From: Dimorphilus gyrociliatus
Lineage: Eukaryota > Animalia > Annelida
NCBI GenBank assembly: GCA_904063045.1
Contig: CAJFCJ010000002.1
Location: forward strand, 2,785,891 to 2,849,890
Direction: 5' to 3'
DNA length: 64,000 bases
The notes below the pieces were generated by a model. The model had not been told where the DNA came from, made no database searches, and saw nothing but the letters and a program-made list of their open reading frames with translations. Shown here piece by piece: positions 1 to 64,000 of this stretch (position 1 is its first letter; each line of letters begins with the position of its first letter). The position numbers and the translations under genes are program-made.

Positions 1-738
1 ATATAATCAATAAATGCGCCCGTAAGTGTGAGGAGGTGGCTAAGGGAGAGGGAGAATGGGGGAGGGGAAAAATGCCCCTAGTATAGATTATTAATGACCA
101 GTTGTTTATTCGACTTTCTAAGCGTCCTTGCATAATTTACACTATTCTCTTTTTACATCGGAAAGGTTATTGATTTTTCGAGTACCTGCTAGCATTCGTC
201 AATTAACTTACCAATCGTGAACAGCGTTAAACGACTCCTCATTCGTGATATCATACATAAGAATAAATCCCATAGCCCCCCGATAATAGGCTGTCGTTAT
301 TGTTCTGTATCTGCAAAGATTAATTTCAAATTGTACTCGTTATTGATTACTGAACTAATAAAATATTCAAAATCAAGGTATTCTTCTCAAAACCAATAAA
401 TAAAGCCATAAAATTGTCTTTCCTGTTTTCATGGAAAATAACATACAACTATAAAATTATAAAAAACAAAAGTACTCAATCAAACTCTGAATCAATAATA
501 CGTTTGCTTTTTGAATAGATCATACTCGAGTAAAGAGTTTATAGTATTAGATTAATATATCTAATTATTAAGATGTATAAAATCTTGTTATATAAAACAA
601 GGAAAATTTAATAAACGTATCAAGATGGCGGAATACGAAAAATTAATTAATCACCTGATGATTTCAAAATATACTGTAATATACCTTGATTATTCAGAAT
701 GAGTTGGAAAAGAGCATAAACACTAATAAAAAGCTCAC

Positions 739-983
739 CGTTCTTGTCCAGCTGTATCCCATATTTGCAGCTTTACCCTTTTATCTTGCCTGAAGACGGT
801 CTTCACCTTAAAATCAATCCCTACCGTCGAAACAAATGCCGATGTGAAGGAATCATCCGCATATCGGAATAAGAATGAGGTTTTGCCAACGCTTGAATTG
901 CCGATTATGAGCAATTTAAACATATAATCGAAATTCTGGTCGGCTGCATCTTTGGTCCACTGACTACTGTTCGATGAAGCCAT
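739..983 (-). CDS. Rab3: Ras-related protein Rab3, first coding exon (gene continues beyond the left edge of the window)
   Basis: Translation [82 protein letters not shown] is the Rab3-specific N-terminus with G1, G2 and G3 motifs. The acceptor tttttttgcag abuts the ATG at 983. The donor CG|GTGAG at 738 is phase 2. The ORF-track start at TTG 989 lies in the intron. Confidence 0.96.
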
Positions 984-1289
984 CTGCAAAAAAATGCAGT
1001 TGATGCAGTAACTGTTGACACTCCTGACATATGGGAGAGTCTATCATATGTATTTACTAAAATTGATACATTTTCAGTCTTTAAATTTATTTTTATAAAA
1101 TTGTATTTATAACAAGCTTCCAGCCTTCAATAATTTAAATAATTATCTGATTTAGGTTTAATTCGTTGGAAATAGCCCTTAATAAAGATTAACAGATGTT
1201 AGTTTTTAAAGAATAGGTTAATATACCTTTTACTTCGTTTGGAATGTTTCGAAAATTATGAGAGAAAGTGTAATCAAAGAGAAAAAACG

Positions 1290-4455: not shown

Positions 4456-4487
<32 letters not shown>

Positions 4488-5676
4488 AGCAACAACAGCA
4501 GCAGCAACAACAACAACAAATTCAATTAGCCTCCGGTTTGTTCCTAAGTCTTTGCGACATTTTCTAATTCATTTTCTGATCATATATTTTTACTCTGACA
4601 GTAGCGGCCCAGCCATCGCAAGGCCAGCAGTTTTTACTTATTCAACCACCTGGTGGCGCACAACCGCAACTTGTTCTCGCCACTCAACAAGTTATCAACG
4701 CTGTACAGACCGTCCAACAGGCATCCCAAATGGTCTCTTCGACTCAATCAAACACACAGGCAACACCAGTCGCTGTTCTGCCAACAACACCACAACAGAC
4801 ACCAGCCTCTCCATCTACTCCCAGCTCTTTAAGGAATCTACCTCCGGTAGTAAGTGTTTTTCAAAAAGAAAAGAGTTTTTTTAAGAATTTTGTTTTTTAC
4901 AGGAAGAGAACATTGATTTAGAAGAACTTGAGCAATTCGCAAAACATTTTAAAAGGCGGCGAATTGAACACGGTTATACCCAAGGAGATGTTGGAATCGC
5001 TATGGGAAAAATGTATGGGAATGATTTTTCCCAAACAACCATTTCCCGATTTGAAGCTCTTAATTTGAGTTTTAAGAATATGTGTAAATTAAAGCCAATG
5101 TTACAGAAGTGGTTACAAGATGCCGAAGCTCTGAAAACAGCTCAGTCTGTTCAAATAGCCAATCAGAATCAGCAAAATAATGTAGTTAGTATGGATGCTG
5201 ATCAGCAAAATGCCGTCTTTCTTCCTGTATCAAGGAGGCGGAAAAAAAGAACGAGTATCGATACAGCAGCCAGAATTTCTCTAGAGAAGCACTTTAATGG
5301 AAATCCGAAACCTACTGGTGAACAAATTCAACAAATAGCTGATCTTCTTGGTATGGAGAAGGAAGTAGTCAGAGTTTGGTTCTGTAATAGGAGGCAAAAA
5401 GAGAAGAGAATTAATCCCCCGTCCCAATTAGCTGCCGCTGTTGCTGCTAGTTTGGCAGCCAACGGTAATAGTTTCACTACAAAATCGGAGTCTTCCAATA
5501 CGCAACAGGGGGGAATGGGTGCAGCATCGCAACTTGTCTCCCAGGTTGCAATCCAAATACAGCAGCAGCAACAACAGCATTCGAGTTTGGATGGACAGTT
5601 ATCCTTGCCGGTCGTAGTTTCTTCCGAAAATTCTGATACAAAACTTTCGGCACTTTTACATTCGCAGTCCGCTTGA
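1483..5676 (+). CDS. POU2F: POU domain class 2 transcription factor (Oct-1/Oct-2/nubbin-pdm-like), about 587 aa, 9 exons
   Basis: Phase-consistent exons 1483-1525, 2181-2227, 2290-2337, 2616-2831, 3233-3280, 3407-3508, 4298-4535, 4602-4849, 4903-5676. The last exon encodes the POU-specific domain ([10 protein letters not shown]...[27 protein letters not shown]) and homeodomain (RRRKKRTSI...[15 protein letters not shown]); GNDFSQTT and KEKRINPP are class II signatures. The N-terminus is Q-rich. The exon 3 donor (GTGCCT) is weak. Confidence 0.93.
4424..4519 (+). repeat. Coding CAA/CAG repeat (QQQHQQHQH followed by Q23) in POU exon 7
   Basis: Mixed CAA/CAG codons read directly; 23 consecutive Gln at 4451-4519. 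Confidence 0.95.
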
Positions 5677-10599: not shown

Positions 10600-13500
10600 A
10601 TGACGCTACTGTATATTTATAGTACTTTATTTTGTTTCAGCTTAGTGAGTTTTGCAATGGTGATTACCATTCGTAAGTTTTTCTATTATTAAATGAAGAA
10701 TATTCTAAAAGATCGCCATTATTATTATTTTAGTGGCTGAAGGCCCTATAGCACCTACCATTAAATCAAATTCTGATGAAGTTATTATGATAGACAACGA
10801 CTCAAAGTTGAAATGTTCACTCGTTTGGAATCAGCGTAATGCTAGAATGGATGCAAGGTATATTCGATTTATTTTGTCTTATAAAGCTTTTAAACATTGA
10901 ATTTAACTTCAGAACTGGAATTTATAAAATAGCTTTTAACTATGACGCACCTACCATCGATCCTGTCAGAAATAAAAATAAAATTCACTTGGATGAAAAA
11001 GCGTCTAATACGTTTGAAATTGAAAATAAATTCGAAAATAAAGGTTATGCTTGGTGTATGGCTTCCTTTGGGGTATTTGGTCAAGTTAAATATTTTGTAT
11101 CAACAACGAAAATTCGAGTTTTACCCAGTGGTAAGTCATTTACTCGGCCGTAAATTACTGATAGGGAAGAGGGATTATATACATATTTTATTTAAATTAC
11201 AGCTTCTAAACCGGGTCAAAAAATGCTGCTACCTGATAAAATTACTAACATAACGAGAAATCAATTTGTTGAAGCACAGATTGACAAATATAATTGTGCA
11301 GCCGCTACAGGCTGTATTTTTCAAATTCGTAGCGAAAAGTTTGTAAATTCAGAACTTGTAACTGTTAAATATGAAGACAGTGTTGCCGTTGATCCCACAA
11401 GTAAGTTTCAAAGTAAAATGACAGTGCTTTTACTGAATAACACATGTTTTTTAGCTGGAAAAGTCTATATCATACAAGCAGATTTCGCACATGTCAAAGC
11501 TACAGATTTCGTTTTGACAATTGTATATAAACCAATAGGAACTCAAAGCATTCTCGGATTTTTAAAACTTGGAGTGAAATACCATAACGATATCAATGCC
11601 AAATCCAAAGACCTCGAACTGCTTCCCTCGGAAGGTGATAGTGTTGATAAACTAGTTTATAATGGACAATATGGTGTTCCGCTAGTCTGCATTCCCACTG
11701 AGAAGTATATATTTTTATTTAGATTGTGAACATTAATAATACCTCGATAATCCGATAGAGTTGCAGTTGAATGGTACAACTCAACCGGCAAATTAGCTAT
11801 TCAAAATTCAGATTTATACACTTTCGATAAAAGTGGCTGGGTTATGTACATAAGTAAGTTTAAATTAAAAATTGAAATATTTTATTATATTATAATTATT
11901 ACAGATAAAGTAAGCAAAAGTACTGCCGGTAAATACGATTGTAAAGTTCACAAAAATAACAAGGTTTATGAAAAGCCTTTTGTCGTTCGAATTTTTGGTG
12001 GGTATACACTTTCCTTATAAAACCTGAAATATATTTTTTTAATAAAAATAGAGCCTGTGAAGATTACCACCAAGCAGCAAAAAGATGTTATTGTTAAAGT
12101 AAAGGAATATGACGCTGCTATCGATTGCAAAGCTAAAGGGACTAATCAAATCAAAATGTATTGGAGAATAATAAAATTTGGTTCAGGTTCAAGTCCGTAT
12201 GTTTCAGGTAATTTCTAAATTTGTTTGTAAGCTATGATATATTATTCTGAAAATGATGTTTGCAGATGAGCAACCAAAGGAAAGTTTTGAATCAGGAGAA
12301 ATAACCTATAGAAAACGTATAACTGAGAGCACAACCATTATATGCTATGCTGAGAATATTTTGCAAGGATTTGATGGTAACAAGAAGAAATTTTTCGTCG
12401 ACTCTTATGCTTATACTATCTACATTATCCGTTAGTGTTTTAATTATGAAAATGGTTGATAAATTAACTTTTTTTGCTGTATAGGCAATATGATAATTGA
12501 AAATCAACCTGAAGATTATAGCCTTGCTCTGGGAGAGGACACAACTATAAAAGTAAGATTAAGACATGGAAATCTATTTGAAAGGAATTGCCAATGGTTT
12601 AAAGATGGAGAGGTAAATTAAATAAGAATTTATAACATTGTGTTGCTTTTTTTAATAACAATAATTACTACAACAGAAAGTCTCTGAAGATAGAGAATAT
12701 AAGCCTACAGTTGACTATTATGAGCGTGATGTAATAGATTGCATCTTGAAAATCGAAAAAATTCAGTTTGAGGATGAGGGAAAATATCACTTGGAAGTAA
12801 ATGATGGGGTGACAACATTGATATCAGAATCGATGACATTATCCGTTTTGGGAACGACTAGTAAAGAGCCAGGAAGTAAGTTGTAAAAAATTATCAAATT
12901 TATTTTTCTTGAGAATATACCTAGACACAATAATAAATCTTGTAAGCTTTCTCTAGTAAACATTCTTTACATCTCTATCAGTTCTACTTTCTTGCTATAC
13001 TAAAGTAGCGTATCAATTTTCTTAAACAATACTCTTCGTAAACAAATAGTTCAGTTATTTTTAGTAGAAATATAGCAAGTTGTTGATTCTTTCTAACTTT
13101 TTTCACGGTACATTTCGATAATCTAATGTTGTAGATTTATTGAAGGACTTGTTTTTCATTGATAAAATTCTTTAACGTTTGTTGTTTGATATTTTGCTGA
13201 GCTATGTATATTGCATTTCAGAGATAGCGGAATCTAGTTTGGCTAATTTATGGTGGATTCTCTTAGTGATCTTGTTTATCATAATTGTGGTCGTTGTTAT
13301 CATTGTTATCTGCTTGTACCTGCAGGTAAAAGTCATTGAAGTCATAGGTTTTAAATCTTTAAGCAATAACGTTTTTCGTTGTCTAAATAGCGAAACAAAG
13401 GAGATGAGTATAATATTGATAAGCTCGAAAGAAAACAAGGTCTTGATCCAGAGAAGGAATTGCGAGATGAAGAGTTTAAACATTATCAAAGAGCGTAAGT

Positions 13501-13728
13501 TTTTAAAGAGTTGTCTTGATAGTTGCATAAAATAGTTATTGCTTTAGTGAGGAGCCTCGAATGTCCTCCAAGGCTTCTCTCAATTCCACTGTTAGTCTGG
13601 GAGAAGATGATGATAGCTCAATGCTGGAATACGGTGAACCAGATTCCTCTAAATTTAATGAAGATGGCTCATTCATCGAGGAGTATGGAACTGGTCGAAG
13701 ACGTGGTAGAAACGATACGGAAGTGTAA
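10600..13728 (+). CDS. L1CAM/neuroglian-like Ig-superfamily type I membrane protein, isoform A (about 695 aa; signal peptide, about 5 Ig domains, TM, L1-type cytoplasmic tail)
   Basis: Phase-consistent exons 10600-10672, 10734-10857, 10913-11130, 11203-11400, 11455-11704, 11759-11853, 11905-11997, 12052-12207, 12266-12430, 12485-12612, 12677-12875, 13222-13325, 13391-13494, 13548-13728. Signal peptide MTLLYIYSTLFCFSLVSFA. Ig motifs include WYN...GKYDC and WFKDG...DEGKY. TM is LWWILLVILFIIIVVVVIIVICLYL. Tail RNKGDEY...SMLEYGEPDSSKFNEDGSFIEEY...DTEV* matches the L1-family KGGKY and FNEDGSFIGQY motifs. Confidence 0.85.
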
Positions 13729-14541: not shown

Positions 14542-15181
14542 CTAAAACTAAAGATGGAGAGTACACATCACTCTGGTGGATTATTCTTCTCTCTTCTGTG
14601 ATTATATTGATATCTATGTCGATAATTATTTTCTATTGCTATTCCAGAAAGGTAGACTTTCCCTTAAGGAATTTAGTGAATTGTAAGAGAGATTTCAATT
14701 TAGATAGACGACTTATTTATATATAAGTATGTATTGCCTATATGTATATAAAGGCAATAAATACAGAGATGAAGTGTGTGTATATATATATGTGTGTGTG
14801 TGTGTGTGTGCGCGCGCATTTGTGTGGTATATAGAGGCTAATATATAAATATTTTTCAGATGTCTGGGCCCTATTTAGCTCCTAGTCATTATTCATTCAG
14901 TGTAAGAATATAGGATAAACAAATCCAATCAGGAATATTTTTTCAATTTTATTCAATTGATTAGATTTATTTTAAAGATATTTTTTTTAAAAAAAAAAAA
15001 ACATACGCTAAATTTTTCTAGATAATCTAATTTTGTTTTCACTAAAAAAAAATAATCTTAGACATCTAGAGTACCATCGACAATTTCAAGGCTATCAACG
15101 AGAAGCGGCTTTCCAGTTGTCGATTACGAACCAGGATTCGATGTTGTTGAAGAAGTTTACAACACCTATCCATATCTATGA
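14542..15181 (+). CDS. Alternative transmembrane plus cytoplasmic cassette (isoform B) of the L1-like gene
   Basis: Exons 14542-14651 (phase 1 in; KTKDGEYTSLWWIILLSSVIILISMSIIIFYCYSRK), 14860-14901 (MSGPYLAPSHYSFS) and 15062-15181 (TSRVPSTISRLSTRSGFPVVDYEPGFDVVEEVYNTYPYL*). All have canonical AG/GT sites, and phases are compatible with the donor at 12875. Confidence 0.7.
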
Positions 15182-26400: not shown

Positions 26401-27126
26401 TGATTGACCAAACTCTATACATCTTAACTAGAAAAAACTAGATAAACGAATAAATTTTAAAGGTGAAAAGATGAAAAATATCTTCTCTACAATAATAGAA
26501 TGTAAGAAAAATTATATCCGATTATGACGTCATGCTATTCCTTTGTCTTTTAATCAACAACAGCGATGCGTAAGTTTGTATAGCTTTCGCAGGCGAACGC
26601 GTCTTTCGAGTAAACATTTGTATTCGATTTTCGTCTGGTCCGACTTGATTTATCTCGGTTGAAAAAGAAAAATTTAATGATGTATACGTAGGAATGTTAC
26701 TGGTTGTGACGTCATCGAAATGAAAATAATTGTTACTATGTATCTTTTAGACTAGAAAGGGGAGGCAATAAACTAATGTAGTGTTACCATATGATGCAAA
26801 AAAATTGAGATGTGAAAGCTCTAGTTCAAAAAAAAAAACTAAGAGAATAAAAGAGGAGGTGCTGAAGAAAGATATTAAGAGGAAAGAGAGAGGGTGAGGG
26901 ACTTATTAGTATGCAACGTAAAACATTGATGAATATGTATTAAGAACCTTACGAATATGCGTCTTCTATCGTTTTCCCAGAAGAATTAACTCGAAGTTTT
27001 ATTGATAAATCAAATTCTTGAAGCTCCTTACATGTCTTCTATTAAGTTTATCTAACAAGAAACGATTTTTCTCTTAGTCAAATAAAATATGTACCATTAA
27101 TTTTTATCCTTATACAAATATTTATA

Positions 27127-27171
<45 letters not shown>

Positions 27172-30100
27172 TGTATATATATTTTCTTATATCTTATCTT
27201 TCTCACAGAAGGCTCCGAGTAACGCTAAACCAGTAAAATGTGAAGCTTGCGAAATTACATTAAATTCCGAACGTCAGGCCAAACAACATTTTGAAGGCGT
27301 CAAACATTTGAAACAATTACAAAAGAAAAAAATGCCTTTACCGCCCGAACTGGAAGAGAAATTGAATAAATACAACGAAAAGAATTGTAAGTTTATTAAG
27401 ATTTTTTTCTTCCGTTTTCTCCTTTCCTCCTTTCTTTATTAATTAATGGCTGAGATATCATCTGCTTTCACTCTTTTCTCTTTTCTCTCCCATACTCGTT
27501 AAGACTTTGTTCATTTACTACACGAATAATCTATTCGTTGATTTGCGGTCTTAGATCTCTACGCCAGTTAAATATATTAAGAAAGAGATTAATGGATAGA
27601 TAAACTAGGTGAAGAATAAGGGAGGGAATGGGAGAAACAAATGATAGAAGAGGAAAAAAATGAAGAGGGGGAGGGGGTTAGAAACAAAGTAATAAGAAAG
27701 ATAGAGAAAAGGGGTAAGGAAGGGGGCAGAAAGAAATGAGGTAGCGAATGAGAAGCCAGTGTAATTAGACTGCGAATGTCAAGTTTATAAGCTGGTAGGG
27801 CAAAACGCGTTGGTCTACTGAAAAATTCTTTTGCACGAAAATGCCAGTTTGGGCAGTTCTACTCCGTCGAATTTGACCTTTAGCTAAGAGCGGTGAAAAG
27901 CTTAGGCCAGTATCGAACGATTAGGATAAGCTTTAAATAAAAAAAACGCTTCTCTTATCCCCTGGACGGTCCTACCGGTTTTATTTGGGATTCAGTAACC
28001 CAATTGGGACGATACATAGCTCAAGAGGTATCGAGGAAGATGGATTTTATAGCTCATAAACATCTTGAAGTCATTTTCCTATGAGTTTTACCGAATTTTT
28101 CCAACTACAGAGCTGCTACATTCATTTTCATTTATCATCTGTCAAGGATTAGTTTGCATCTTTCTCAGTTCTGTTACTTTTTTGATTAGTTATAAAATAA
28201 GACGAAATGAAAAAAAGAGAAACAGCGAATTTAAGTAAAAAAAACCACTTAATCTTCGTATCTTAAAGAGAAAAATAGAGCAAAAATAATTAAACAATTG
28301 ATTTTCTATCCTTCAGTTTATTAAAACTAATATTTTATTAAAAAAGGAAGAATAAGGTGACCTCACGAATAAATTTTTTATAGACAAGGCAAAAAAATAA
28401 ATCTCAGCAATATACTAAATGTACAGGAACTGTCTATATAGAAGTCTGTAAAAGTTTAATTAAACATGTTAGCGTTAATAGTTCACAATGGCTAGACAGA
28501 GTTTTATAAGAAAAACAGATATATTTCTTCTGTATGGATCAATTTGTTGCGTTTTTATATTGTAAATTTGCTTTTATTTATACATTTTAATTTAAATGAA
28601 TGTCAGTCATTCTTCTTTTTTGTTTTTCCTTTAGTTTACACTCTAGACTAACATTCTCTCTTTTGCTATATTCAGCCGAACAGTGACTTAGGTTACGTAA
28701 AAGCTGCATATGAATAATTATATGAATAAAAGTAATAGACTCGAATTTTTCGGCTTGATAGACTGTATATAAGTCTTAAATTTGATCAGTTGCCAAGGCT
28801 ATGATGTCAGTCATTCAAATGAACAATAGTTTTCATTAATAATTACGCATATAATCATAAGGATAAAATTTCACAAGCAAAAATAAAACGAAACACGAAA
28901 TTGTACAGTTCTATTGCTTTGTACGAAACTTAAAGGTTTTCCTTTCATTATTTCCATATTATACTGCAAAAGATAACGATCCATTATGCAGTCCACCAAA
29001 TGTTGCATATAGTACACATAGAGATGGAATGATCTTCTGAGAATTGCAATGACCTATATATGTAGTCGCAGAATATATACATTTTCCACAGTAGATATTT
29101 GTTTCTATTTCCCTTAATTTTTATTGACAATCTAATTATTTATATATAGAGAGTAAGCGCCGTAAAAAAGTATTAATAACCTAATTTATGATTTTTACCT
29201 GGTGTTTCTACTCCCCTCTCCTCCTCCCTCCTCTCATTCTTCCATCACTTCAATATTATATAGGCATAAGCTACATAATTCTATTATGCAAGTTTTAATT
29301 TTATCCATATAGTTAAATTACTAATATCACTTTAAAAAAGGTATAGTATTAATAATAATAATTGAAGAAACAAAAAATGATAAATAACAAACTTTTAATA
29401 GTTCAAGATTAAGAAGGTTTTCATTATCTTCTTCCCAATTCATTATTCATTAGTAAAGAACCCCAGTACTAAATCATGTATTCTCTTTCTATTTCTCTTC
29501 ATCTAACTTTATTCAAAGTAGAAATCTTTTCCTCTTTTTTAAAGGAAAGAAATATTTTTCATTTTTTGTTTACTTGCCAAAAAATACTGAGGGGGGAAGA
29601 AAGAAACTCTTTGCGAGGTGTCACTAGCCGTTTGCCCTGCCTATAAGACAAGACAAATCTGCTAAAAAAAATCTTTCTGGTTGTTTAGGCCAAGAAAAAA
29701 AATTTAAATAGCTCTTTTCAACTGAAGTAGTAGGCGAAGCAGCCTTCGATCATAATAGATTGAAAGAATGGACACAGTTGCTCTAAGCCCTTATAGTTTC
29801 TTTATTAAAACATTGTCGGTGTTTCTATAAGAGAAGAGATAAGGTTTTCACTCACTACTTTAAAGTTTTGAACTATAGATGGCGTATACTGTGCGAGTGT
29901 TACTATTAATTAAGATACTTCATTCAATATTACTTAATTTCGTACAGTAAATTATCATCACACGACTTGTCTAAAATGTTTCATCACCAACATAAATTCT
30001 TGTTTTATTACATAACATCTGTTTTCTTTTTTTTTCAAATTTCTCAGCCAAACGCCGGCGGCAAGAATCCAGACATAAAGGAAAGCCTATGGAAGAAGAA

Positions 30101-41949: not shown

Positions 41950-44900
41950 TTAATCGTCAAGTATCTTTGATTTAATATCTTGCAGTTCGATTTTTTCATC
42001 ATATTTAGACGCCTGGCAAGAATCGGAATTTACTAAGGGCGTCGCTTGGAAGAAATCAGCAAATTGTAAATTGTCCAACGATTCAGTTAAATCATCCGTT
42101 TCTTTATTCCCTTCATTTTCTTCTTTTCCTTGGCCAATACTACGAACGAGGAGCGTAATAGGCGATTTAGCAAATTTGATAGCTTCAACTGCCTGTTCGT
42201 GCCTTGCATTTCTAATATCCTGACCGTCTACTTCCAATATTTGATCTCCCTTTTTCAGTTGTCCAGCCGCCGGCCCACATTCGGCAACTTGTTTAACAAA
42301 TATTCCAGATTTAAGCTCATTCGGAAAGATTTCGCTATCCATTTTACCGCCGACAATATTTAAGCCCAGGGACTCGTCATCCTTTCTATAGAGTAATGAA
42401 GAAACAATACATTAAAAAAATTAAAGAAGGAAAAGAAGGAAGACGAAGAAAAAAAAACTCTATCTATTTTTCAATCGATAAAAGTCTATTCCTTAACGAA
42501 AATCGTTAGGTTTACGGCGTTAATTTTGCTAGATTTCCATGCGGGAATGCTCCATTTTTAGACTTATCAATTTGAAATTTGTTCTATTTTGAACTATCAT
42601 ACATATTTGATAATAATAAAAAAAATATCGCAGAGTAGAAAACGTTAAATATAAATAACGAATATATAATGGATTTTCGTATAAAAAACGAATTTAATGG
42701 CTTTGGTAAATTTAGATCGATATCAGTACTCTATTAGTTATTAGCGTGTATGAGAATAGGTGCGATAAATGATTCTAATTCATCATATTAATATATTAAC
42801 AATACTAATGCCTATTATTGTAAAGGTGGAAATATTATAATAGATCATAAAACAATAGCCATACCCTTTTACTTTCATCGATTAAATCAATTTACTATTT
42901 TCGTTAATTGTCTTTAAAAATAACAAAAATTAAAAGAAAAAAAATGGAGAAGAGAGTGACTATTAAGAGATAAAAAAAAATCTTTCCTTATTAAAGGACA
43001 CGGCCTGTATATTCTCAGCACCATTTTTAATTATATAAAGTCTTTTTATGACCGGAATAACATTTGTTAAATGGAACAAAATATAAAGAATAATGTATAA
43101 CCTGTGAATTGTAATTCTTATGGGATCGTTAAAGAATAAGGCCTGATCTATTTGGCGTTTAATAGATGTTGTCGATGTGCTGGCGTGAAGGGTTGAAGGT
43201 TGGTTTTCCTGAGTGGTCGGGCTCCTATTATTTTAATTTATTAGAATGAATATGAGATATATCAAGTGTGTATAATAAATATATTAGTAGGGTAAAAGTT
43301 ATTCCAAATCACTTACTGTGATGAAAGACATGGTTCTGCAGTTGAATTATTTGCATCCCTGAGTAGTGAATTAAACTCGGCAGATTGTTCTAAAGACTTA
43401 GTACTACCGCTCACCACCACCTAAAGTAAGAAAGAGATAAAAAAATATTATTTATTAGCCATTTATTATTCATATATACATGCTAAACCTCATTGGAAAT
43501 TATGGAAGAAGTATCTGTGCATATATTGACAAATTCTCCAAACTCAATGTGTTCGTAATTTTCACTTATATCGTCCATTGAACTTTCTGGTGAATTTGGT
43601 GACAAGGGTTTGATCAAACCTATTCTAGTTTGACCAGGTGGCGCCTCTGTGAAAGATAAAAAGAGTTAATTGTTTAATCTAACAATTAGCTAAAAAGAAG
43701 AGAGGTGTCAATAACATTCATTAACGAACCTTTGAGTGCCTTAACGGCGTCACTGACACGGCCATTTTGCAAGGAGATATCGTTTACAGAAACAATTCTG
43801 TCACCCGGTAAAACTCTTCCGTCCGCTTGAGCTACTCCGCCAGGAACTAATGACCTAACGATAACTATCCAATCCCCTGGCTTCAAGGGATCTTCATAAT
43901 CTATCATAGAGAAACCCAAACCCTTATTGGTTTTTGGTAGAGTCACTTCTGTGACGGCTTTGTTCCAAACTGTTACGGCTGTTAGAGGTTCAACAGAACG
44001 CCACCTAGCAACTGGGTAATGTCGATCCATCACTAGGCATGCCTCTGATTTCGCTTTGAACAGCTTTTCTGACGTCACAAATGCTTTCCTGCGGCAGACT
44101 ATTCGAACGTTAAGTGGCAGCTTTTTTAGTATGCTTAAGACGTTCTTGTAATTCTTGCCAAACAAAATTTCATCATTAACTTGAAGAAGTTCATCTCCTT
44201 GCATTAATATACCATCTTGGCCGACGGGTCCTTCTTTGAGAATACTTCTGATATAGTGATGAGGTCGGACTTCTACGCCGTCCTCTATATCGACAGTACC
44301 TTCGAGACCGACCCCTAATCCCCCACCATCCCTGAACTTTGAAACGTGTGCTATTATTATTTCGCCCTTAGGGCAATTTAGCCTATTTTCCCAATTCCTG
44401 ACTAGCTCATCTTCCGGGTTAGCCTCGATGGGCAGCTGATTGTCATTATCATCTTTTCTTGGATCAATTTTATCCTGATTAACGTTTAAGCTCTTTGAAC
44501 TATTTTCCTTATTGCCTTCGCTGTCCTCTCTGATATTTAATCTAGCCAATTTCATTGTAACCATTTTTCCAGTCGATTTCAGCACCTCGACAGCTTGAGC
44601 GTTCGTAAAACCTTCTAAGCTCTGTCCATTTACCTGCAAATATACAAGATGATTGGTATACTCTACTCACGTGAATGTGAAATAATATAAAGAGTATTAA
44701 ATATGTGATATATGATGAATTTTTTTATAGCCACATCAAAGTTTTAGTAAATTATGCATTCGAAAAAAGACGATTAATAAGGTTTGTAAGGTTTCTCTTT
44801 GCCTAATAAAATTTACCTCCACGATCCGATCATGCGGCTGAACTCGACCATCTAAAGCCGCCGCACTTCCATCGAGAACGTGCCTAACGTATATTCCGCA

Positions 44901-45663
44901 GAGTTTCTCGTTAGCCGAAAAACCCACAAGACCGGCTATCTTTATGCCCAAGCCCGACTCGTCTTTAACTAGGTCGACGTCGAATACTGTTTCTACAGGC
45001 ATAGACTCGATTGTTTGCTGGGTTTTATGCAACGTCGGAGGCGTGAAAATTTGCTCTTTATCTTTTAGTTCCTTATGAAATGTAGCGTTCGTATAATCTT
45101 TAATAGGGCTTTCATAGTCTTCCTTTTGCTTTTCGGGTGTTTGGAAACCTTGAGAGTCATTTGTAAAGCTCTCTGTTAAACCTAGTGCGTACAATTGATG
45201 TAAATGTTCTTCTAGACGCTCAATTGGAACAGCTTCTGAATATGGAGGATTCCTAGCAACTTCTGAGGACTCTGATATTGATCGAGCAACTACCAGCCTG
45301 ATATGACTTCCCGCCTTCCTCAAAACAAAAGCTACCTGCTCTGAGCTCATTCCCCTAACTGACCATTGGCAAATATGAAGTAGATGGTCGCCAATCTTCA
45401 AACGGCCGTCGTTGTCCGCAACACCGCCTGCTATAATCATTTTTACTGCAACACCCGTTGATTTTCCGCCCATTATTCCAAATCCCAGGCCGTTACCGTT
45501 GTTTATAAGATCAATCACTTCTACTGCTACAATATCGCTGTTTAACTGCAAAAAGAAAAAAAGTGATTTATATAAGATTTATACCCTCTTAAAGCCTAAA
45601 CTCAATAAGCGTCTCGAAAACTTGTTTATGGCATTTGCTCGCAACACTTATTTTCACCTGCAT
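41950..45663 (-). CDS. MPDZ: Multiple-PDZ-domain scaffold (MPDZ/PATJ-like), about 819 aa with five PDZ domains
   Basis: Minus-strand exons 45663-45658 (MQ), 45545-44817, 44633-43730, 43646-43489, 43420-43317, 43224-43102 and 42385-41950 are phase-consistent. PDZ loops GLGFGIMGG, GLGIKIAG, GLGVGLEG, GLGFSMID and SLGLNIVGG resemble MPDZ PDZ2, 3, 4, 5 and 7. The two-codon first exon is inferred from ATGCAG|GTGAAA. Confidence 0.88.
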
Positions 45664-53400: not shown

Positions 53401-53995
53401 TATATTTAGCCATTAATATTACTGCTTACTTGACAAAAAAATATATCTCTTGTTTCTTTTAGTAATAAATATGGCTGAAAGATGGCGAAAGATAGTAATT
53501 TTTTCTTTAGAAGCATGTATTATTTTAATATTTTTTTGAAAAGTATTATTATACTAATATTTTTATCTATTGCATACTTTTCCTATAATTTTCTCATTTG
53601 ATAACTCTTTTAATGCTTGTGAGTACCTTACGACGAACTCTAAGGCAATGAAAAATGCTATTCCTGTTTACGTTTTTGTATGTATTGTCTGTATTTCTAT
53701 CTCTCTCTCCCCTCTCTCTCCCTCTGCATCTCTGTCTCTCCTTTCCCTTATCCTCTTATTCTTTGTTCATCTAATCTCCCGTCAAATTCATTTTATCTTA
53801 TTCACTCTTAAAAATGAAAGTTTCTTTAATTATTATTCAAAAAGATTCTTTATTTCTGTAAAATTCTTTCCTAAGATTAACAAATAAATCTTTTAAAGAA
53901 ATGAGATAAACTTTATACAAAAATAGATCGTCAGGTGGATTTCATCAAGATCATAGTTTATGGATAAAGATTTTTGCGATATTATCGGGTTTGAA

Positions 53996-54507
53996 TCATG
54001 AAGGTAAATATTTCTTCTGGCTATAAGTACCAATAAAAGATCCGTCCTCATTAAACTTGCTGATATCCGGTTCACTGTATAAATCTGAAGCTTGACTATT
54101 TTCTAAAGCAGATTCAAATGAAGATTCTTCCGGATTGTATGGATACCTTATGGAAAAATAAAAACATCTATTCTGGTTACTAAATCGTAATAAGAAGTTC
54201 TGAAATTTTTCTTGATATATTCAAATTCCTCATAGAATCAACTTACGAATCCGACAGGCCTAGTAAATCATTGGGGGTAAATATTCCGGATCTTCTTTCC
54301 GCCTTTTCCACATGATATACGGCTCCTTTTGACTGTAAAGCGATGACATATTAAAGAATAATTAAGTATGAACTTTATATTTCTTTGAGAAATGAATTAT
54401 CTTAAATAAGCAATATTAACACAATATCTATAGCAGCAATATACTAATATACTGAGAGCAATGATAACCAAGGTAGACAATAAGACGGTTAAAATAATCC
54501 ACCACAT
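53996..54507 (-). CDS. Small L1CAM-type membrane protein: TM helix plus cytoplasmic tail only (107 aa), absent from the ORF track
   Basis: Exons 54507-54421 (MWWIILTVLLSTLVIIALSILVYCCYRYC), 54332-54247 (SKGAVYHVEKAERRSGIFTPNDLLGLSDS) and 54146-53996 (YPYNPEESSFESALENSQASDLYSEPDISKFNEDGSFIGTYSQKKYLPS*). Intron phases 0 and 2 are identical to tail A of the L1-like gene. The exon 1 donor (GTTAAT) is only moderate. Confidence 0.8.
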
Positions 54508-54883
54508 TGTTTGTTTCTACGCGATCGGAAGGCAACCAGCTATTATTAACAATATCGGCTTACACATGAACAGTTTGAACGCAATACAGATGTTTTATAG
54601 GGAAAAAAATGTTTTATTGATTTTTTTCCATTCATACAACGTGGTACGATTAGAAAATTATAGGGTATGTTGCATGGGCTGTAAAATTAACGTAAAAAAT
54701 AAAAAAAAATTAAGCTATTTATTCCATTTCAACCAAAATAAATGAGGTAAAAGTGCATTTCTATTTTCTTTCATTCATCCATTCATCCCTTTCTCTATCT
54801 TCCTATTTCTGTCACTGTCTTTGGCTCTCTGTTTCTGTTTCTGTCTTTCTCTGTCTCTTTCTCTCTGTGTTTCTGTCTCTCTG

Positions 54884-54922
<39 letters not shown>

Positions 54923-57467
54923 GTTTTTGCTTTCTCTTTATACACATCTCTCTCCCTGCCTGCTTCTTTCTCTATATATGTTCATTAATTCTTTTCAAAT
55001 ATCCTTTGCTAGAATGCTTATGGATTGTCCTATGCAAATTAGCCTATAGTTTTTCATATATATTTATAGTACAAGAAAAATTTAACTTTAGTCGTCAATA
55101 GTTTTTATAGATTTTTTATCCTTATCAATGTACTGTGCAACATGTATTGTTTAAATTTGCACGTACAGTGTTTATATACATATATATATATAGTATATGC
55201 TGCATGTACTAATATAATTATTAACAATCAATCTAGAAATTAAACTTGAATGAAGCTAACGCAATAAGAAAGAATATTGTTACCCTCATTCTCTTATTCT
55301 TTATATTTTTACTTCCTACCTTCAACGAAAGTACAAAACAAAAAATAGGATATTTTATATCTATTTCCAACTCTTGTCACCTTCAACTTTACTAAAAATA
55401 ATCAAATAGTAGAAAAGTAGAATGAAGAAGATAAATGAAAAAGAAAAGAAGGATTCGAAAATTATAGACAAAGTATTGTCAAGAAGAAGGATTTATAAAA
55501 GAGAAACTGTCTGAAAACGAAGACGAGGACTGTCTCTTTTTTTTTCTACAAAACTACTTTATGAATTTATTCTATTACATGTGTTTTCTTTTCGATAAGT
55601 ATATTTCCGTTAAATGTAAATTGAAAATAAATTACAACGGTAGAATATACAGAATGTAGAATCCATTAATATAGCTTTTCACGCTTATGCTAAATTCTCT
55701 AACCACACTAGAATTAGTACATAGTAGTAAGTGAATAAAAAAGATTCTCATATCATTTTTCTGTATTTTGTCTTCCTTGTAAATTGGACAAGAAAAAAAC
55801 TAGAACTAGTTTTAAGAACGACATTTTCTCTATTAATTAACTTTTAAATGTTAATTTTCGAAATGTTTTCAATTATCCGATTCGATAGACAGCTAAGTGG
55901 AGGGGATGCATGAAAATCGGATGAATGGAGAGGATAGAGCGAAAGAGAATATATAAATAATACAAAAGTGGACTAAATACACTTAGAATAAATCTATATT
56001 TGTAAAAGAAAGAAAATTTTATAATCACACAACATACTAATATATTTATAATTGGAAAAATTGAAAAAAGGAGACATTTTTTCTTGAATTAATACTATTA
56101 AATATTTTAAAAGTAAAAAGAATTGGCTATAAGTTTAAAGCGAATTATATTACTATATTATAACTTTTATATGCAATGACATGTAGATCTTTGTAGGAAT
56201 CATGCTTCACTTGTAAAAGAAAATCTTTCCATCTTTATAAATTATTTATTGCTATTTTTTTTTCTATTATATTTCATACTTTCGTTTTAAACCAGGTACT
56301 ATTTATTATATTAACGATATACAAACCAGAAACGTAAACGGATTACACTATTTGTCTTATTATTCTTTGTAATATTCAATATTTTCGTCCTATTAAGTGT
56401 TTCCTGTCTCTTTTTTATAGGCTTAAAATATATTGTTTAGACGCTAAACTTTTGCTATAATAATAATATGTACTGCTATAAATTATATGTACATTAATAT
56501 ATGACACTACGCCACAAAGTAAATAATTTAAATATATACCGTAATTACTTGGTTGTGTTTAATTCCATCTCCGAAAAATTTCTCATTAGTATGCACTATA
56601 CAACTTTCCTCTATGCTTTCAAATGCTTGCATGATATTGCTTATATATTAGAGTCCGTTAACAGGAAATTTTTGAATAATTATCCTTCTAATTAAAGGTT
56701 CAGGTATCATAATTAGAAGCAATAAGAAAATTAAATATATTGTCAATAGATTTCCTTAAATACTTGTTTTAGCTATTTTATACGTTAGTTTTGTTATTTG
56801 TCATCTTTAATAGTCATATTTACCTTTAATCACTAGTATCATATATAAGAGTTTATAGAACAAACATCAAGAACAGCAGCATCATTATACAATATATTTT
56901 TAAATGTTAATTCTCAATAGATTATAACTTATTCAACAAATTGCTACACTTGCTATCCAATCACATTTTAGTGTCACTTCTTTTAACAATAGCGATGCCA
57001 TTATATTTGATACCTATTTTTTAAGAGATTCTTCTTAAAAATAGAATCTATAATAATTTAATAACACGATCGACTGCAATCCAATATCCACCGATTTATG
57101 GTCAGTATAAAATAGAAGCCCCGGGGAAATGGCTCATTTTTCCAATTTTGTTAGAAATGTTGATTAATTGTTTGTGGCGGCAAAATAGAATGTTTAAAGA
57201 TTATATGAAAAACTTGCCATAAAAATTATAAAGTAATTGACAGGATATTAAAAGTGGAATTTATTTCATTAACGTTAACTTTAACTTTTATCTCATCTCA
57301 AATATCTAAGATATTTTACGTCCTATTTTCTTTTCTCTTTCACTTCTCTTCACTTATTTCTTTTTATAAATAAAATATAAAAGAAAAGACTTCAGAATAT
57401 ATAATCAGAATAAAAAAGATTGTTTCAAGTTGATAAATATATTTATTATCTAATTTGATCCATACCT

Positions 57468-57502
<35 letters not shown>
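57468..57502. repeat. (CTAT)n tetranucleotide microsatellite
   Basis: Read directly. Confidence 0.9.
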
Positions 57503-57503
<1 letters not shown>

Positions 57504-60500
57504 ATCTCTCTCTTTCCTTCTGCTATATATATATATATAAATATATTACCACCATTCCACCCCTCTTCATCTTTTTCATCTTGGCTTTCTTCCTCTTTTT
57601 CTTTAATTAATTTTTACTTACTTGCCCTCTGTTTCCTTCTTCTGTCCATTACCTCTGGTTCCTTATTCTTTCTATCTATCTAACTATCTGTCATTATTTA
57701 TCATACACTTTTACTAAAGTTCCTTTTCTTTCATAACAAAAGAAATAAATCATGACAAATATAAATTGTAGATATTATGACTAATTATTATATCTCTTAT
57801 TCCTTTTTCACAAAATACTTAAAAAGAAAAGAATGATATTTATATAGTATAAAAAAGCATATTTTAGCTCTTTAAATTGGTTATATAGTATATCGCTCCT
57901 CATTTGCTAAATTGGTTTAAAACAATACGACTGATTAAAAAGAAATGGAATTAGCTGTAGTAAGATACGTAATATTTTTTAACTGTAGATCAAACATGAT
58001 TTTTGTAGAGAACTATTAGGATGAGAGAGAGAGAGAGAGAAAAAGAAAGAGAAATAGCAGGGTCGCGGAAGTATGGCCCAGTCATAGGAGAAGTGAAGGA
58101 ATGGAGATATTTAGATCTACTCTAAATTTCTAAGAAATAGTAATTTAGTAGGAGAAACAATTAAAACCTTAGCTTTGAATATCCAAACTATTGTTAAATG
58201 ACCGACCGGTAAGATATATCTGTTCGCTATCAATTATTTTCCGCATGTTGAAAGGTTTAGAATTCTCTGTCGTTTCCTTTGCTTTTTTCAACTTTAATCC
58301 TTAAAAATAGATCGAAAAGGCCGACCTTATCTAACCTCATCCTACGCTTCATATTGTTTGATATGTTTAAAGAGAAGGAAAGGGGCGGGGAAACATTTTT
58401 AGATGCTTTAAAAGGCCATCTATTTTATGAAAAAAAAAGTGCTGTAAACTGTTACAAATATATCTATATATTGACATAAATATAATATACTATATGTAAT
58501 TTTAAAAGCTAAATAACATATAAATTAGCCAATTTTTACAAAATAGAGAACTATTGAGAAAGTGAGAGTGATAAAAGTTCTCAAAATGCAATAAAATCTT
58601 TGGAACTAAATAAATTTTCAATTACAGATGCGCTCAATCTCTCAAAATGATATCGGATAAATCTCTTTACGTTAATCTCATAAAAAGCTACAGTAATCTT
58701 TTCAGCAAAGATCACTTGGATAAATTTATTCCGAATCGAAATATTCTTAAGCTCAGTCGTCATATTCAGCAAGAGAATATAAAGATATGTTTGATTAATA
58801 AATATTCTTTTCTAGTTTAGACTTTTTAGTATTATATGTTGAATGTGTGATAGAATATCATTCTATTTCATATATTATACTATAGAGATTGAAGATATAT
58901 GTAGATCTGAATAAAAAGTAGAGCCTACAAACAGTATATATCTTAATAACCCTTGTTATTTTTCTCTTTCTTCAATCCATCTTTTAAACCTTCGTTATTA
59001 AATCCCTTAACCTCCCTCCTTAATTCTATCCCCACTCCGACATTTCAATCATCCTTATGTTAACTTCAAACAAATGTAACAAATATGAGTGATATGTATT
59101 ATTTATTAAGAGAATATCAAATTTAATCAAGATAATTTTTAATGTTTAATTTAACGAGAGTTCAGTCGTTTATTCTTTTACAAAATTTTCGTTTTTTTAT
59201 GTTATAAATATGTTACTTTCTCTTTTCTTGTTCTCTCTCTCCATCTCTCTCTCTTTTTTTTTAATTTTTTTCTTTTTCTTTTTCTTCTTGTCAGTGTATT
59301 ATGCTTTTTAAAAAATTGAAATAATAAAATAAAAGGACAACTTTAGCTTCCTTTCTTGAGTAAAAAAAGAATAAATTCATTCTTTACACCTAGCAATTAT
59401 AGCTAGCCTCTTTAAAGCAAATAAAAGCGACAGTTGTTTAATTCTATTGATCATGATACGAATTATAAATTTCGTTCTTATATATCAAAATATAGAAAGG
59501 AATACTTCAGTATTTTAACAAGAAATACCGTTTTAAGCAATCTACGTAAACTGCGCCAATCTTTTCCAGTTTTTTGTACATTCTTAGAAATATATTTTTA
59601 TTTAATATTTATTATTTAAATAGGACAGCAGTATCAACATATTGCCCTTAAGAGAAGAGGAAAATCACGAATGAAAGACTTTAATTAGAAACACTTACGT
59701 GTTACCTCCCTTTTACTTTGAAGAACTACAAACAGCGATCTACCAGCACGTTTCCTTAACTATTCCCGTTTCATTAGGAGAAAATGAGGAAGAAAAGATG
59801 ATAAAACTGAAAAAATAGGTGTATGATAATTATTAAGATTACAAACTTTTGATTATCTTAATAAGGACAAGTTTATATCGTTTTGTGTAATAATATTCTC
59901 TTTCTTGTTTCCTTAGCGATTAGCAAACTAGTAAATTAAAAACCTTTTAACTAAAGTCATTTTTTTTTAAATTTTATCTACTACTTAAGGAAAAGAGGAT
60001 TCAGGACTTTTTCTATCTGTCACTCTCCCCTACCCTTCTTTCCACTTTACCTCTCAGTCTCATCTTCTGCCTCATCATCTACGCCATCTTTCCACATTTC
60101 CTTGCTTTAGTAGCTAACTCTTCAGCTGGTTATAACTCAAAATGAATTGGCAAGCAAATTATCATTTCATTGTCTATTTGGCATAACACCTTGTTAGCTG
60201 GTATGCATGGAAATGTTGAGTCAAATATTCTCATATGTTAGATCTAGCAACCACTAACAGCTGCGCCTATCAGAGTTTAATTCTCATTGTTTTGTCCGAA
60301 ATCTTTTCGTTTGCCATTCCTCCTCCTATTCATATAAACTGAAACTAAATGAACTGAGAATTAGGATTCCAAAGCAGTCTCAATTATCCATCTTCATCGG
60401 TTTTAGATATTTGCTCTTATTATTTAGGTCTTTCGTAACCTTTTAAATCAGACTTCTTAATCTCTTTGTATAATGATGGACTCGTGTTTCAAAGCCCCTA

Positions 60501-63196
60501 GACAATTCTTTAGCTATAATCATTAAGAATACAGACTATAGTACTCTTCGTATCATTATTTACCATGTAAAGGAAAGAGTTTAAGAAAACGTTCTGAGCA
60601 TTTCTCCTTAAACTCTGGAAGACTTTAATAATTTTACCCTCGTTAGATTATTCATCTTCAAGTAGGTATGTTCCCCTCACCGCTATGCTTACTTTTATAC
60701 AAAATCATCAATTAAATTCATAATTATCCGAAAATATATTTTAATAAAGCTGATATCAAAAACGAAGACTGATAATTCTTAATATTGATCAAATAGGTAT
60801 ACAAAGTATACAATTACGCTTATATAGATATGTTACAGTTACTTTTTAACTATATATATATATATATATAAACTATTTATAAGGTATAATGTATATTTAT
60901 TCTAAAAATAAAAAAGAAAAGAATTAAAAGGATATCGAAAGAATTGTTTAGTATTTTGAATTATTATTATTAATTATTGGACGTTATAAGTAGTGGTGAG
61001 AGTCAAGTTTCCTATCTATCATTTTGGGTCAATCTTGATTATTTCTAATTAAAAAGACATAAAGGTATATTAAGTAATTAACAGTTGTTTTATGAAGGTA
61101 ATATACAATTTATTATATTTGCTTTACATTATAGATGTCTATATATCTTATTAAAATAAATAGTTATTTTATAAAATAATGTTACGAAAGTAGTTTCATC
61201 TGCATTCCCTATGATATATACCTATATATATATACAGTATATAAATATAAATATATACTGTACACTGTATATAAATTATTAGATCTTTTCTAACAACGAA
61301 GTAGTGACAATTGCTTATCCTATTCTCCTTCCTCCTTCTTTTCCTCTGCTCCTCTACTCCTCGCCCCAAGCTAATGATTCATCTTTCTGATAAGATACAT
61401 ATTAAATTTTTAGAAAATATGGTTCATTTTACGTATATTTTATCGTTTACAGCAACGTCAATTGCTCAATTACGTTGTCCTTGCCAGACACCTACGAAAG
61501 ATCTCTCTAATGTTAAATTGTCAGTAGTTTCTAAAGGCTTTTAAAAAAATGAAATGGCATTTATTCGGTTATGTAATTTGAGAAGCTGCGGAACACCTAT
61601 ATAGCTTACTAATAAATAATTCACATGATCTATCTTTTTTGCGGAATATCTTCTACAAACGACTCAGAATGTTAAAACTCCATTTAGATATCAATAAGTG
61701 AATATGTACTGGAAAAGAAAAAAAGATGCAACGAAATTTTTTGCTGGCCTTTTGTAGCGAATACGAATATACTTCTACTTGGTCACGTTATTAGGTCACT
61801 TACCTTTAGCAGCCTTCATCTTTTAGTTTGGAAATTAAAAAGATTCTCTATGATTAGTTACAAAGAGGAGAGAGGAAAGAGGAAGAGAAGTTGAATAAAA
61901 ATAAACTTTAAGCCCTTATTTCTTTTATGTTTATAAAACAAGAAATAAGCTAATTCTGAGAGTTTATATAGAAACACACAATATATAATTGTGATATATA
62001 TATACATTTACTATATAAATAAGGTTTATGAAATGATGGAAAGAAGCAAAACAGTTTCATATTCTTAGTGTTGATCACTTCTCGGAGCGCTTGCTAATTA
62101 TATTAAAATCATAATCTACTTTCTTGTAAACTTATATAAAATATGTTTTAGAATAATTATTGTTTAGGTATTCTTTTTAATAACCCTTGTTTATTATAAT
62201 ATTATAGATCGGTTGAAGATATAAACTCCTTATTTCCTATTAAATTTATTTGTTCATACTTATATCAATTATTTAAATGGATCAGCGTCTAAGGCAATAT
62301 TGGTCTTCCAGCAGACATATTGTTCTAGCCGATGGCAAAGATAAATATTATAATCTTGATCAATACATCGTTAAGTACCAAGATCGAAGCTAAGAACCGA
62401 TCAAAATATAATCTGTCCTATAAGATTCCCTAATTTTTTTAACCGCACAGCTACATAGACAACGCTCTTTACGAATATTATGCTCCAAATTGAAAACGAA
62501 TCCATGTTTACATAGTTGGAGAACTATCATGGAGAAAATTCTACTGGAGGCCACTAATTCGATAATACTTTATGCAAAATACGATCTATGGGTGATTTAC
62601 CTTTTGAAATGCTTTCAAAGTTAACAGGCTTTAGCATAAAAACTAATTAACAAATTACCTCAGATGCTACCAGATTTTTACTCAGACTTTAGTCGAATAT
62701 AAGACGTTCTTGTAATTAAATAACTTAAATTTAACATCGGAAATTTTACACTAGTTGAAGTGAAAGTGGAAAAAGATACATCGACTTTATTGCAAGATAA
62801 ATTTTTGATTTAAGAGGAGTAAGAGTCACTAGAAAGAAATCTTCTAATACGAGACAATACGTTTGGAGAGGACAAAATGAAAGACACACTATCTTGTCTC
62901 TGTTCCCGATAGAAAAGTGTAGGTACTTCAAGTTTGGCTTCTTGCGTGATAGTAAGAAGTATCAGTGACGTCATAAAGACCACAAACAAAAGTACGGATT
63001 TTATTGTTGTTCGTTGACCTACCCTAATGAGCTGTCATGGAAAAGGCTATTTTTTCTTAGTCGGCTTAGAAACAACATAATTATTTCATATGTTGCATAG
63101 AAAAAAATCACAAATAAGTTACAGGTGGCGCTTCTGTAACAAAAAGTGCTAGAGAGCAAAAGGAGGCAAAGGAAATCGCTTTCTCTCATTCCAACC

Positions 63197-63455
63197 ATGA
63201 ACAACGTTTCGAACGAATCAAACTCAGAAGTTCCGGTATGGAAAGCAATGACGGCTTTAAAAATATCTGGAATTTGTGCCTACATAACAGTGTTTACAGT
63301 GGCCGTGGTCAACAATTTAATTGTTCTAACGGTGATAGTTACCCAGAAGAATATGAGGAATAGTACTAATTTATTCATTGGAAATTTAGCTGTGGCTGAT
63401 TTAACTGTTGCTTTTCTGGTTCAACCGTTCACTTTATTTCACGAGCTTTTGATGG
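63197..63455 (+). CDS. Class A (rhodopsin-like) GPCR, probably a neuropeptide receptor; first coding exon (N-terminus, TM1, TM2)
   Basis: MNNVSNES (two N-glycosylation sequons), TM1 ICAYITVFTVAVVNNLIVLTVIV, MRNSTNLFIGNLAVADL (TM2 LAxxD motif) and QPF. Phase 1 donor G|GTATTA at 63456. ACCATG is a good start context. The rest of the gene is not found in the window. Confidence 0.88.
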
Positions 63456-64000
63456 GTATTAATCTTTCACTATAAACAAATTCTTTTCTTTTATCAGGCT
63501 TTAAATGCGAAGTGTGAATTAACGTAAGACTACAATGTCTCATGTATACTTTTAAGACTACTATATTTTCTTAGCTGTCATTTTACTTTATGTAATACCT
63601 ACTATAGATTAAAAGGAAAATACATCCAACATTAGGCTTAATTTTATATTGTCTTTATTGTATTCTTTCTTAAATTTGAAACGTAGTTAAACTTGTTTTA
63701 GCTGTGCAAGTTGTCAATATCGTTCTTACCTTTTCCTTATTTACGATCTAACGATTTCTCATTGAAAGTTAAAATTTTTTTTCCTGTTTTTTTTTTTCCA
63801 ACAGAGAATTTATATTATAGACCTTACTCTTTTCCTCTAAAACAATTAAATAATATTAAATGAATAAGAGACAGAAAATATCTAATATTTAATATTAAAG
63901 ATGTGTAAAGTGATAATGAAGTATGAAAATGAACAGTGATAGAGAAATGCATTTATGACTGGATCTATTTATTGTACATACATTTTCTCTTACGTACGCT

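Follow-up and report, generated by a model that had tools for sequence, protein, structure and literature searches.

A minus-strand locus at positions 54507-53996 of the window, i.e., the whole 64,000-nucleotide stretch of Dimorphilus gyrociliatus DNA analysed here, is probably (with a rough probability of 0.7) an independent, expressed, protein-coding gene for a headless L1-type tail, consisting of a transmembrane helix and a cytoplasmic tail only. As read from the sequence, the locus comprises three exons with canonical GT..AG introns and encodes 107 amino acids in total, compared to the roughly 1100-1300 residues of typical L1-family members. The three minus-strand exons, the 107-residue product, the N-terminal helix and the L1-type tail that an initial annotation of this DNA had described were all present. 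Assembled contigs of four public runs containing part of the stretch, and carrying three organism labels, were placed on positions 53700-59650, leaving out the simple repeats at 53700-53740, 54816-54934, and 55165-55199. Run X4 stems from the same organism, X1 and X2 from a relative (organism A), and X3 from a relative designated organism B. The parts of the gene are, in 5' to 3' order:

54517-54567, minus strand: upstream open reading frame (uORF) of 16 codons, in frame, from ATG at 54567-54565 to TAG at 54519-54517; hydrophobic and signal-peptide-like
54508-54582, minus strand: 5' leader, transcribed at least this far, containing the gcgtag acceptor, which is unused (its AG is 54518-54517), as well as the in-frame TAG (54519-54517)
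54507-54421, minus strand: coding part of exon 1, ATG at 54507-54505, 29 codons, ending in phase 0
54420-54333, minus strand: intron 1, 88 nt, GT..AG; the joint in the X4 contig skips 88 nt (54332/54421, CT..AC), with an equivalent joint in X1, X2, and X3
54332-54247, minus strand: exon 2, juxtamembrane SKGAVYHVEKAERR (begins SKGAVYHV) with the KGxxY motif, ending in phase 2
54246-54147, minus strand: intron 2, 100 nt, GT..AG; the contig joint skips 100 nt in all four runs
54146-53996, minus strand: coding part of exon 3, acidic linker and ankyrin-binding-type segment YSEPDISKFNEDGSFIGTY, TGA at 53998-53996
53849-53995, minus strand: 3' UTR, with a candidate AATAAA at 53854-53849 read from the sequence; the X4 contig reaches 53975

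The first exon encodes a methionine leading directly into a 23-residue hydrophobic helix (mean Kyte-Doolittle value of residues 1-23, 2.41), followed by YCCYRYC. The initial annotation was right in placing YCC after the helix, but the exon does not end immediately behind it, as the donor lies after Cys29 in phase 0. The in-frame TAG reported 9 nt before the ATG was found at 54519-54517, inside the gcgtag sequence. With this stop codon in the leader just 5' of the ATG, the protein must begin at the membrane helix. At the other end of the frame, exon 3 includes SKFNEDGSFIGTY, and its acidic stretch is followed by YSEPDISKFNEDGSFIGTYSQKK and then by TGA.

The X4 contig (420 nt, depth 97 in a 60-Mb assembly) was 100% identical to the window (0 differences) and fell on 53975-54143, 54244-54332, and 54421-54582. 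As it lacks both introns, it is RNA-derived, and the orientation of its splice sites places the transcript on the minus strand. At 54517 the contig was unspliced: it continues across the gcgtag acceptor and the TAG as far as 54582, 75 nt 5' of the ATG. The contigs of organism A (X1/X2, 737 nt) and organism B (X3, 443 nt) shared all three exons with the window, at an identity of about 90%, and in both the likeness to the window ended at 54512, 5 nt upstream of the ATG. Beyond this point the organism A leader has 76 unlike letters in place of the 68 of the window, and then 28 letters that match 54581-54608; this renewed match shows that the leader is collinear and not spliced in. In organism B, 30 loose leader letters share TCCGATC with 54529-54523. 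Read by eye, these letters apparently lack the gcgtag and, provided that the final aligned bases agree, would place a TAA 3 nt 5' of the ATG. On the 3' side, the organism A contig was collinear down to 53919 and continued for a further 222 letters. A low-depth X1/X2 contig retained intron 2, as pre-mRNA would give.

All three assemblies hence point to a short mRNA, spliced in at least two lineages, in which coding conservation begins at the ATG. Across the gcgtag acceptor, where RNA data had been proposed as a check, no contig had a joint at 54517, X4 reading through and organisms A and B being collinear; the short, collinear contigs support the earlier claim of a stand-alone gene without ectodomain and not of the terminal exons of a longer one. 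The contigs mark a lower bound of the 5' extent (at least 54582) and not the transcription start, and rare variants drop out of contigs. A retrocopy as the source of the spliced contigs was ruled out by the locus-specific collinear leader and the accompanying contig that retains intron 2. Trans-splicing onto the gcgtag acceptor was shown by no contig; according to the Dimorphilus gyrociliatus genome paper, spliced leaders or trans-splicing were not found (PMC7854359).

The leader contains the in-frame uORF listed above, which is probably non-coding or regulatory, given the lack of leader conservation in the relatives. It may be a translational brake or a remnant, and may dampen translation of the main frame. 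The 28-nt island at 54581-54608 (minus strand), which includes CTATAAAA, has two mismatches in the transcript contig of organism A, where other letters stand in place of the 68 nt between island and ATG. The island possibly serves as an element of the leader or the promoter. We rejected the TATAAAA at 54598-54592 as a core promoter, since the X4 contig reaches 54582 and the organism A contig contains the element. Low-depth contigs were also placed farther upstream, at 54620-54745 (X3), 54683-54712 (X1/X2), and 55075-55581 (X4), and could come from an extended leader, from a different RNA, or from carried-over DNA. The gene may accordingly have a longer leader, a start farther upstream, or a rare, longer isoform. 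The last of them, 0.5 kb upstream of the gene, is 507 nt long (depth 8.6), identical to the genome and unspliced. It may lie on either strand; none of its open reading frames gave a Pfam match, and it may belong to an extended leader or to a non-coding RNA of its own, or else stem from carried-over DNA. X4 contigs were absent from 55.6-59.65 kb, short repeat matches excepted.

We also searched for an ectodomain. A tblastn search against 16-64 kb with all ectodomain ORFs of an Ig-bearing L1-like paralog, which the window likewise contains, matched only the transmembrane and tail exons, and ten ORFs with 46 aa or more on the minus strand of 54.5-63.3 kb yielded no Pfam domain. The two scans agree with the initial annotation that no Ig or FN3 exons lie upstream in the window. 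One marginal tblastn match (56862-57062) was discarded as an ectodomain candidate, being full of stops. In the surroundings, the first exon of a rhodopsin-family GPCR (63146-63475, plus strand; 7tm_1, E = 2.9e-10) is divergent from the tail gene, with about 8.5 kb between them, and a multi-PDZ scaffold gene (41953-45578, minus strand; ORFs of 153, 326, and 280 aa, intron of about 72 nt) follows downstream of the tail gene on its strand. The window also contains a POU-homeodomain gene (2616-5673, plus strand) with long poly-Gln, poly-Thr, and poly-Ala runs at 4240-5673, the first exon of a Rab3-like GTPase (738-1040, minus strand), and an ORF with a U1/matrin-type zinc-finger-like motif, C-x2-C ... 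H-x5-H (27101-27439, plus strand); the stretch from 16 to 41 kb is otherwise gene-poor and rich in microsatellites.

The KGGKY-like juxtamembrane motif of L1 proteins binds ERM proteins, and the FIGQY-type segment mediates ankyrin binding, which in neurofascin is regulated by tyrosine phosphorylation. Scanned against Pfam, exon 3 matched Bravo_FIGEY (PF13882) with 31 bits (gathering score 23.8, E = 5.8e-07) over profile positions 56-86 of 86; the exons were scanned singly, so that the match covers just the C-terminal half of the profile. Of the 107-aa product for which the HMM check had been proposed, exon 3 by itself thus exceeded the gathering score, and exon 2 by itself gave no match to Bravo_FIGEY or any other Pfam family. 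Among solved structures, the sole match to exon 3 was the neurofascin segment fused to ankyrin-G in PDB 7xce (7xce_A), in which FNEDGSFIG is identical and FNEDGSFIGQY aligns with FNEDGSFIGTY here. Residues F1202, E1204, and Y1212 of the neurofascin FNEDGSFIGQY are essential for AnkG binding (PMC9396398), and the equivalents of all three are present in the tail. The juxtamembrane KGAVY aligns with KGDEY of the paralog, K, G, and Y being invariant. Judged by these matches, the tail is an L1-family Bravo_FIGEY tail. The gene itself is set apart from the L1-type adhesion molecules proper as a tail-only derivative, because of the TAG in its leader, the unspliced upstream AG, and the lack of Ig and FN3 exons in the window.

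The Ig-bearing paralog lies 40 kb from the tail gene, on the opposite strand:

about 10.7-15.2 kb, plus strand: Ig-bearing L1-like paralog, with transmembrane cassettes at 13222-13325 and 14542-14652 and tail exons at 13391-13494 and 13548-13728

Its two alternative transmembrane exons both have phase-1 acceptors, fitting the phase-1 donor at 12866; the first leads to the KGDEY and FIEEY exons, the second to a different tail ending near 15181. Exon 3 of the tail gene was 65% similar to the paralog tail exon over 23 aa (E = 3e-09), and exon 2 shared an invariant K-G-x-x-Y...K-x-E-R..G with the exon at 13391-13494. The transmembrane exon was 34-40% similar to both paralog cassettes; the WWI core is invariant, and the Met here corresponds to a Leu there, before WW. 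Intron phases are common to both genes, 0 after the transmembrane exon and 2 before the last exon. The low per-exon similarity (29-65%) indicates that the duplication is old and that the frame has survived. On these likenesses in sequence and intron phase, the gene is an old, diverged derivative of the 3' cassette of an L1-type gene, i.e., of its transmembrane helix and cytoplasmic tail. While in the paralog Ig-type ectodomain exons feed the phase-1 transmembrane acceptors, the tail gene has a start codon in place of the Leu and a stop just upstream. The two genes also differ in the ankyrin-binding segment, which reads FIEEY in the paralog and FIGTY in the tail gene.

Comparing the coding sequence of the window with organisms A and B, we counted 10 synonymous and 4 replacement differences. 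Organisms A and B share every listed difference, and the 14 changes are therefore effectively one lineage comparison. At the sites where differences could be listed, pS was 0.286 and pN 0.031, giving a pN/pS of 0.108 (one-sided binomial test, p = 7.9e-05). Three of the four replacements (T12I, L13F, and I15V) are conservative changes within the helix, and the remaining one is an E-to-G change in the linker. Of the 89 letters of the transmembrane exon 17 differ in the relatives, and the ankyrin-binding segment is the most conserved. The coding sequence is under purifying selection, and a neutral relic is rejected. The initial annotation had looked for a dN/dS below 1, which agrees with the pN/pS of about 0.11 in this one lineage comparison; the absence of expression combined with neutral divergence, named there as the outcome that would speak for a pseudogene fragment, did not occur, as the gene is expressed and shows 10 synonymous versus 4 replacement changes.

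Could the three exons nevertheless be the end of an ordinary long L1-type gene or isoform, whose Ig and FN3 exons lie beyond 64 kb and are spliced in phase 0 onto the acceptor at 54517? A usable AG with a modest pyrimidine tract is located exactly 9 nt before the ATG and would open a phase-0 frame (KQT-M...), the low-depth upstream contigs could represent the intron of a rare pre-mRNA, and rare variants could have been lost from the contigs. We nevertheless consider this improbable, since three assemblies are collinear past the acceptor and have the joint in none, and their contigs total only 420-737 nt. Moreover, the organism B leader apparently lacks the gcgtag and seemingly has a TAA 3 nt before its ATG, and the transmembrane cassettes of the paralog use phase-1 acceptors about 10 codons farther upstream, so that this AG is not the ancestral acceptor. 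Coding potential is absent from 54.6-63 kb, and the GPCR on the opposite strand starts at 63.1 kb. An intron of more than 9.5 kb feeding this exon would be unusual given the median intron of 66 bp in Dimorphilus gyrociliatus (PMC7854359). Even less credible, and in our view very improbable, is a transcribed relic of a partial duplication of the neighbouring L1-like gene that is spliced but makes no functional protein. The Ig-bearing paralog at 40 kb on the other strand, the in-frame stop and uORF before the ATG, and the lack of an annotated counterpart in the protein collections searched would fit such a relic. However, replacement changes are strongly depleted (4 vs. 10 synonymous, p = 7.9e-05), a lineage at about 10% divergence has preserved the frame together with both splice sites and the FNEDGSFIG core, the contig reaches a depth of 97 in the 60-Mb assembly, and the 29-65% per-exon similarity to the paralog speaks for an old duplication with a surviving frame. 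Having spliced contigs in four runs, an intact frame, and a pN/pS of 0.108, the locus does not look like a pseudogene.

Returning to an independent tail-only gene, its helix is predicted to insert N-out/C-in as a reverse signal anchor, as no charged residue precedes it and an Arg and a Lys (R27 and K31) follow, the layout of a type III protein. The tail would then be cytosolic, as in normal L1. At 23 residues, the helix would be too long for a typical cleaved signal, and the three cysteines at its cytosolic end are candidate palmitoylation sites. By analogy to the known L1 motifs, the FIGTY segment could dock ankyrin at the membrane, an interaction that tyrosine phosphorylation would probably abolish, and KGAVY is a putative docking site for ERM-type proteins. 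The initial annotation had proposed a type III adaptor of this sort, possibly palmitoylated, that could cluster or sequester ankyrin; the F, E, and Y of the ankyrin-binding segment and the KGxxY sequence would agree with such a role. Without an ectodomain the protein cannot sense adhesion. It might act either as a contact-independent tether of ankyrin and spectrin to the membrane, or as a competitor that takes ankyrin from full-length L1-type proteins. Neuroglian in Drosophila S2 cells attracts ankyrin solely at sites where it is rearranged by adhesion, regardless of the ectodomain it carries (PMC2133023); a headless tail that is not clustered might for this reason be a poor ankyrin binder. 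A weak, diffuse ankyrin binder would suit a role as competitor or buffer as well as that of a contact-independent anchor.

A different fate of the protein has a precedent in human cells, where gamma-secretase cleaves L1-32, a product of ADAM10, and so releases L1-ICD, which signals in the nucleus (PMC2782312). The gene might accordingly encode a ready-shed stub, a type I protein with nearly no ectodomain that is constitutively cut by gamma-secretase into a soluble, signalling L1 intracellular domain. The predicted protein, with 0-1 residues outside the membrane, equals such a stub. What suggests its cleavage is this layout, but conservation is highest in the ankyrin-binding segment and not in the helix (17 of 89 letters of the transmembrane exon differ), and we regard this fate as rather unlikely. 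Taken more broadly, it is a tentative idea that this separate conserved gene provides an "already shed" L1 stub regulating the L1-ankyrin axis, whether as a competitor that uncouples L1 from spectrin, as an adhesion-independent anchor, or as a gamma-secretase substrate.

The tails of L1CAM, neurofascin, NrCAM, CHL1, neuroglian, and SAX-7/LAD-1 share with the tail gene a single transmembrane helix, a candidate KGGKY-like motif (KGxxY), an acidic linker, and FNEDGSFIGxY. Unlike these family members, the tail gene has no signal peptide, Ig or FN3 domains, starts at the first residue of the helix, and has FIGTY instead of FIGQY. The L1-32 fragment and L1-ICD, produced by ADAM10 and gamma-secretase (PMC2782312), are the same kind of product, a transmembrane helix and tail with little or no ectodomain; however, L1-32 arises by regulated shedding, whereas the tail gene encodes such a product directly. 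Neuroglian constructs engineered to carry another ectodomain (Hortsch et al., 1998, PMC2133023) likewise present the tail apart from its own ectodomain, but these chimeras kept an adhesive ectodomain and their ankyrin recruitment was adhesion-dependent (PMC2133023), while the natural tail gene has none.

Searches for further genes of this kind returned no counterpart within their scope. A word-index protein search with the 74-aa stop-to-stop ORF at 53999-54220 (residues 26-74 scored) gave no candidate of 41-130 aa, longer kin being outside its scope. An exhaustive HMMER search with the 49-aa exon 3 against 1.84 billion representatives, which has little power at that size, returned neither a self match nor canonical L1CAMs; its only matches were four bacterial or low-complexity repeat proteins, which are spurious. 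No usable match was obtained with exon 3 in a feature search of the ESM Atlas. In the literature search, no description of an ectodomain-free L1-family gene was found, and mentions of Bravo_FIGEY were confined to generic annotation names from flatworms. Micro-genes of this kind may escape gene predictors, and the protein collections searched may lack the annotation of the source genome.

What the tail does alone, whether in coupling to ankyrin, in binding ERM proteins, or in ICD signalling once L1 has been shed, is a long-standing question in work on L1. The function of the L1CAM, neurofascin, and neuroglian tails has so far been studied with engineered truncations and proteolytic fragments. 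The locus would also be an example of how a micro-gene originates from the 3' cassette of a large gene, by a Leu-to-Met change at residue 1 of the helix and a stop just upstream. A protein of 107 aa would be a simple object for probing adhesion-independent recruitment of ankyrin, or competition for it. A natural, selected tail-only gene would mean that the L1 tail is worth keeping even without an adhesion domain.
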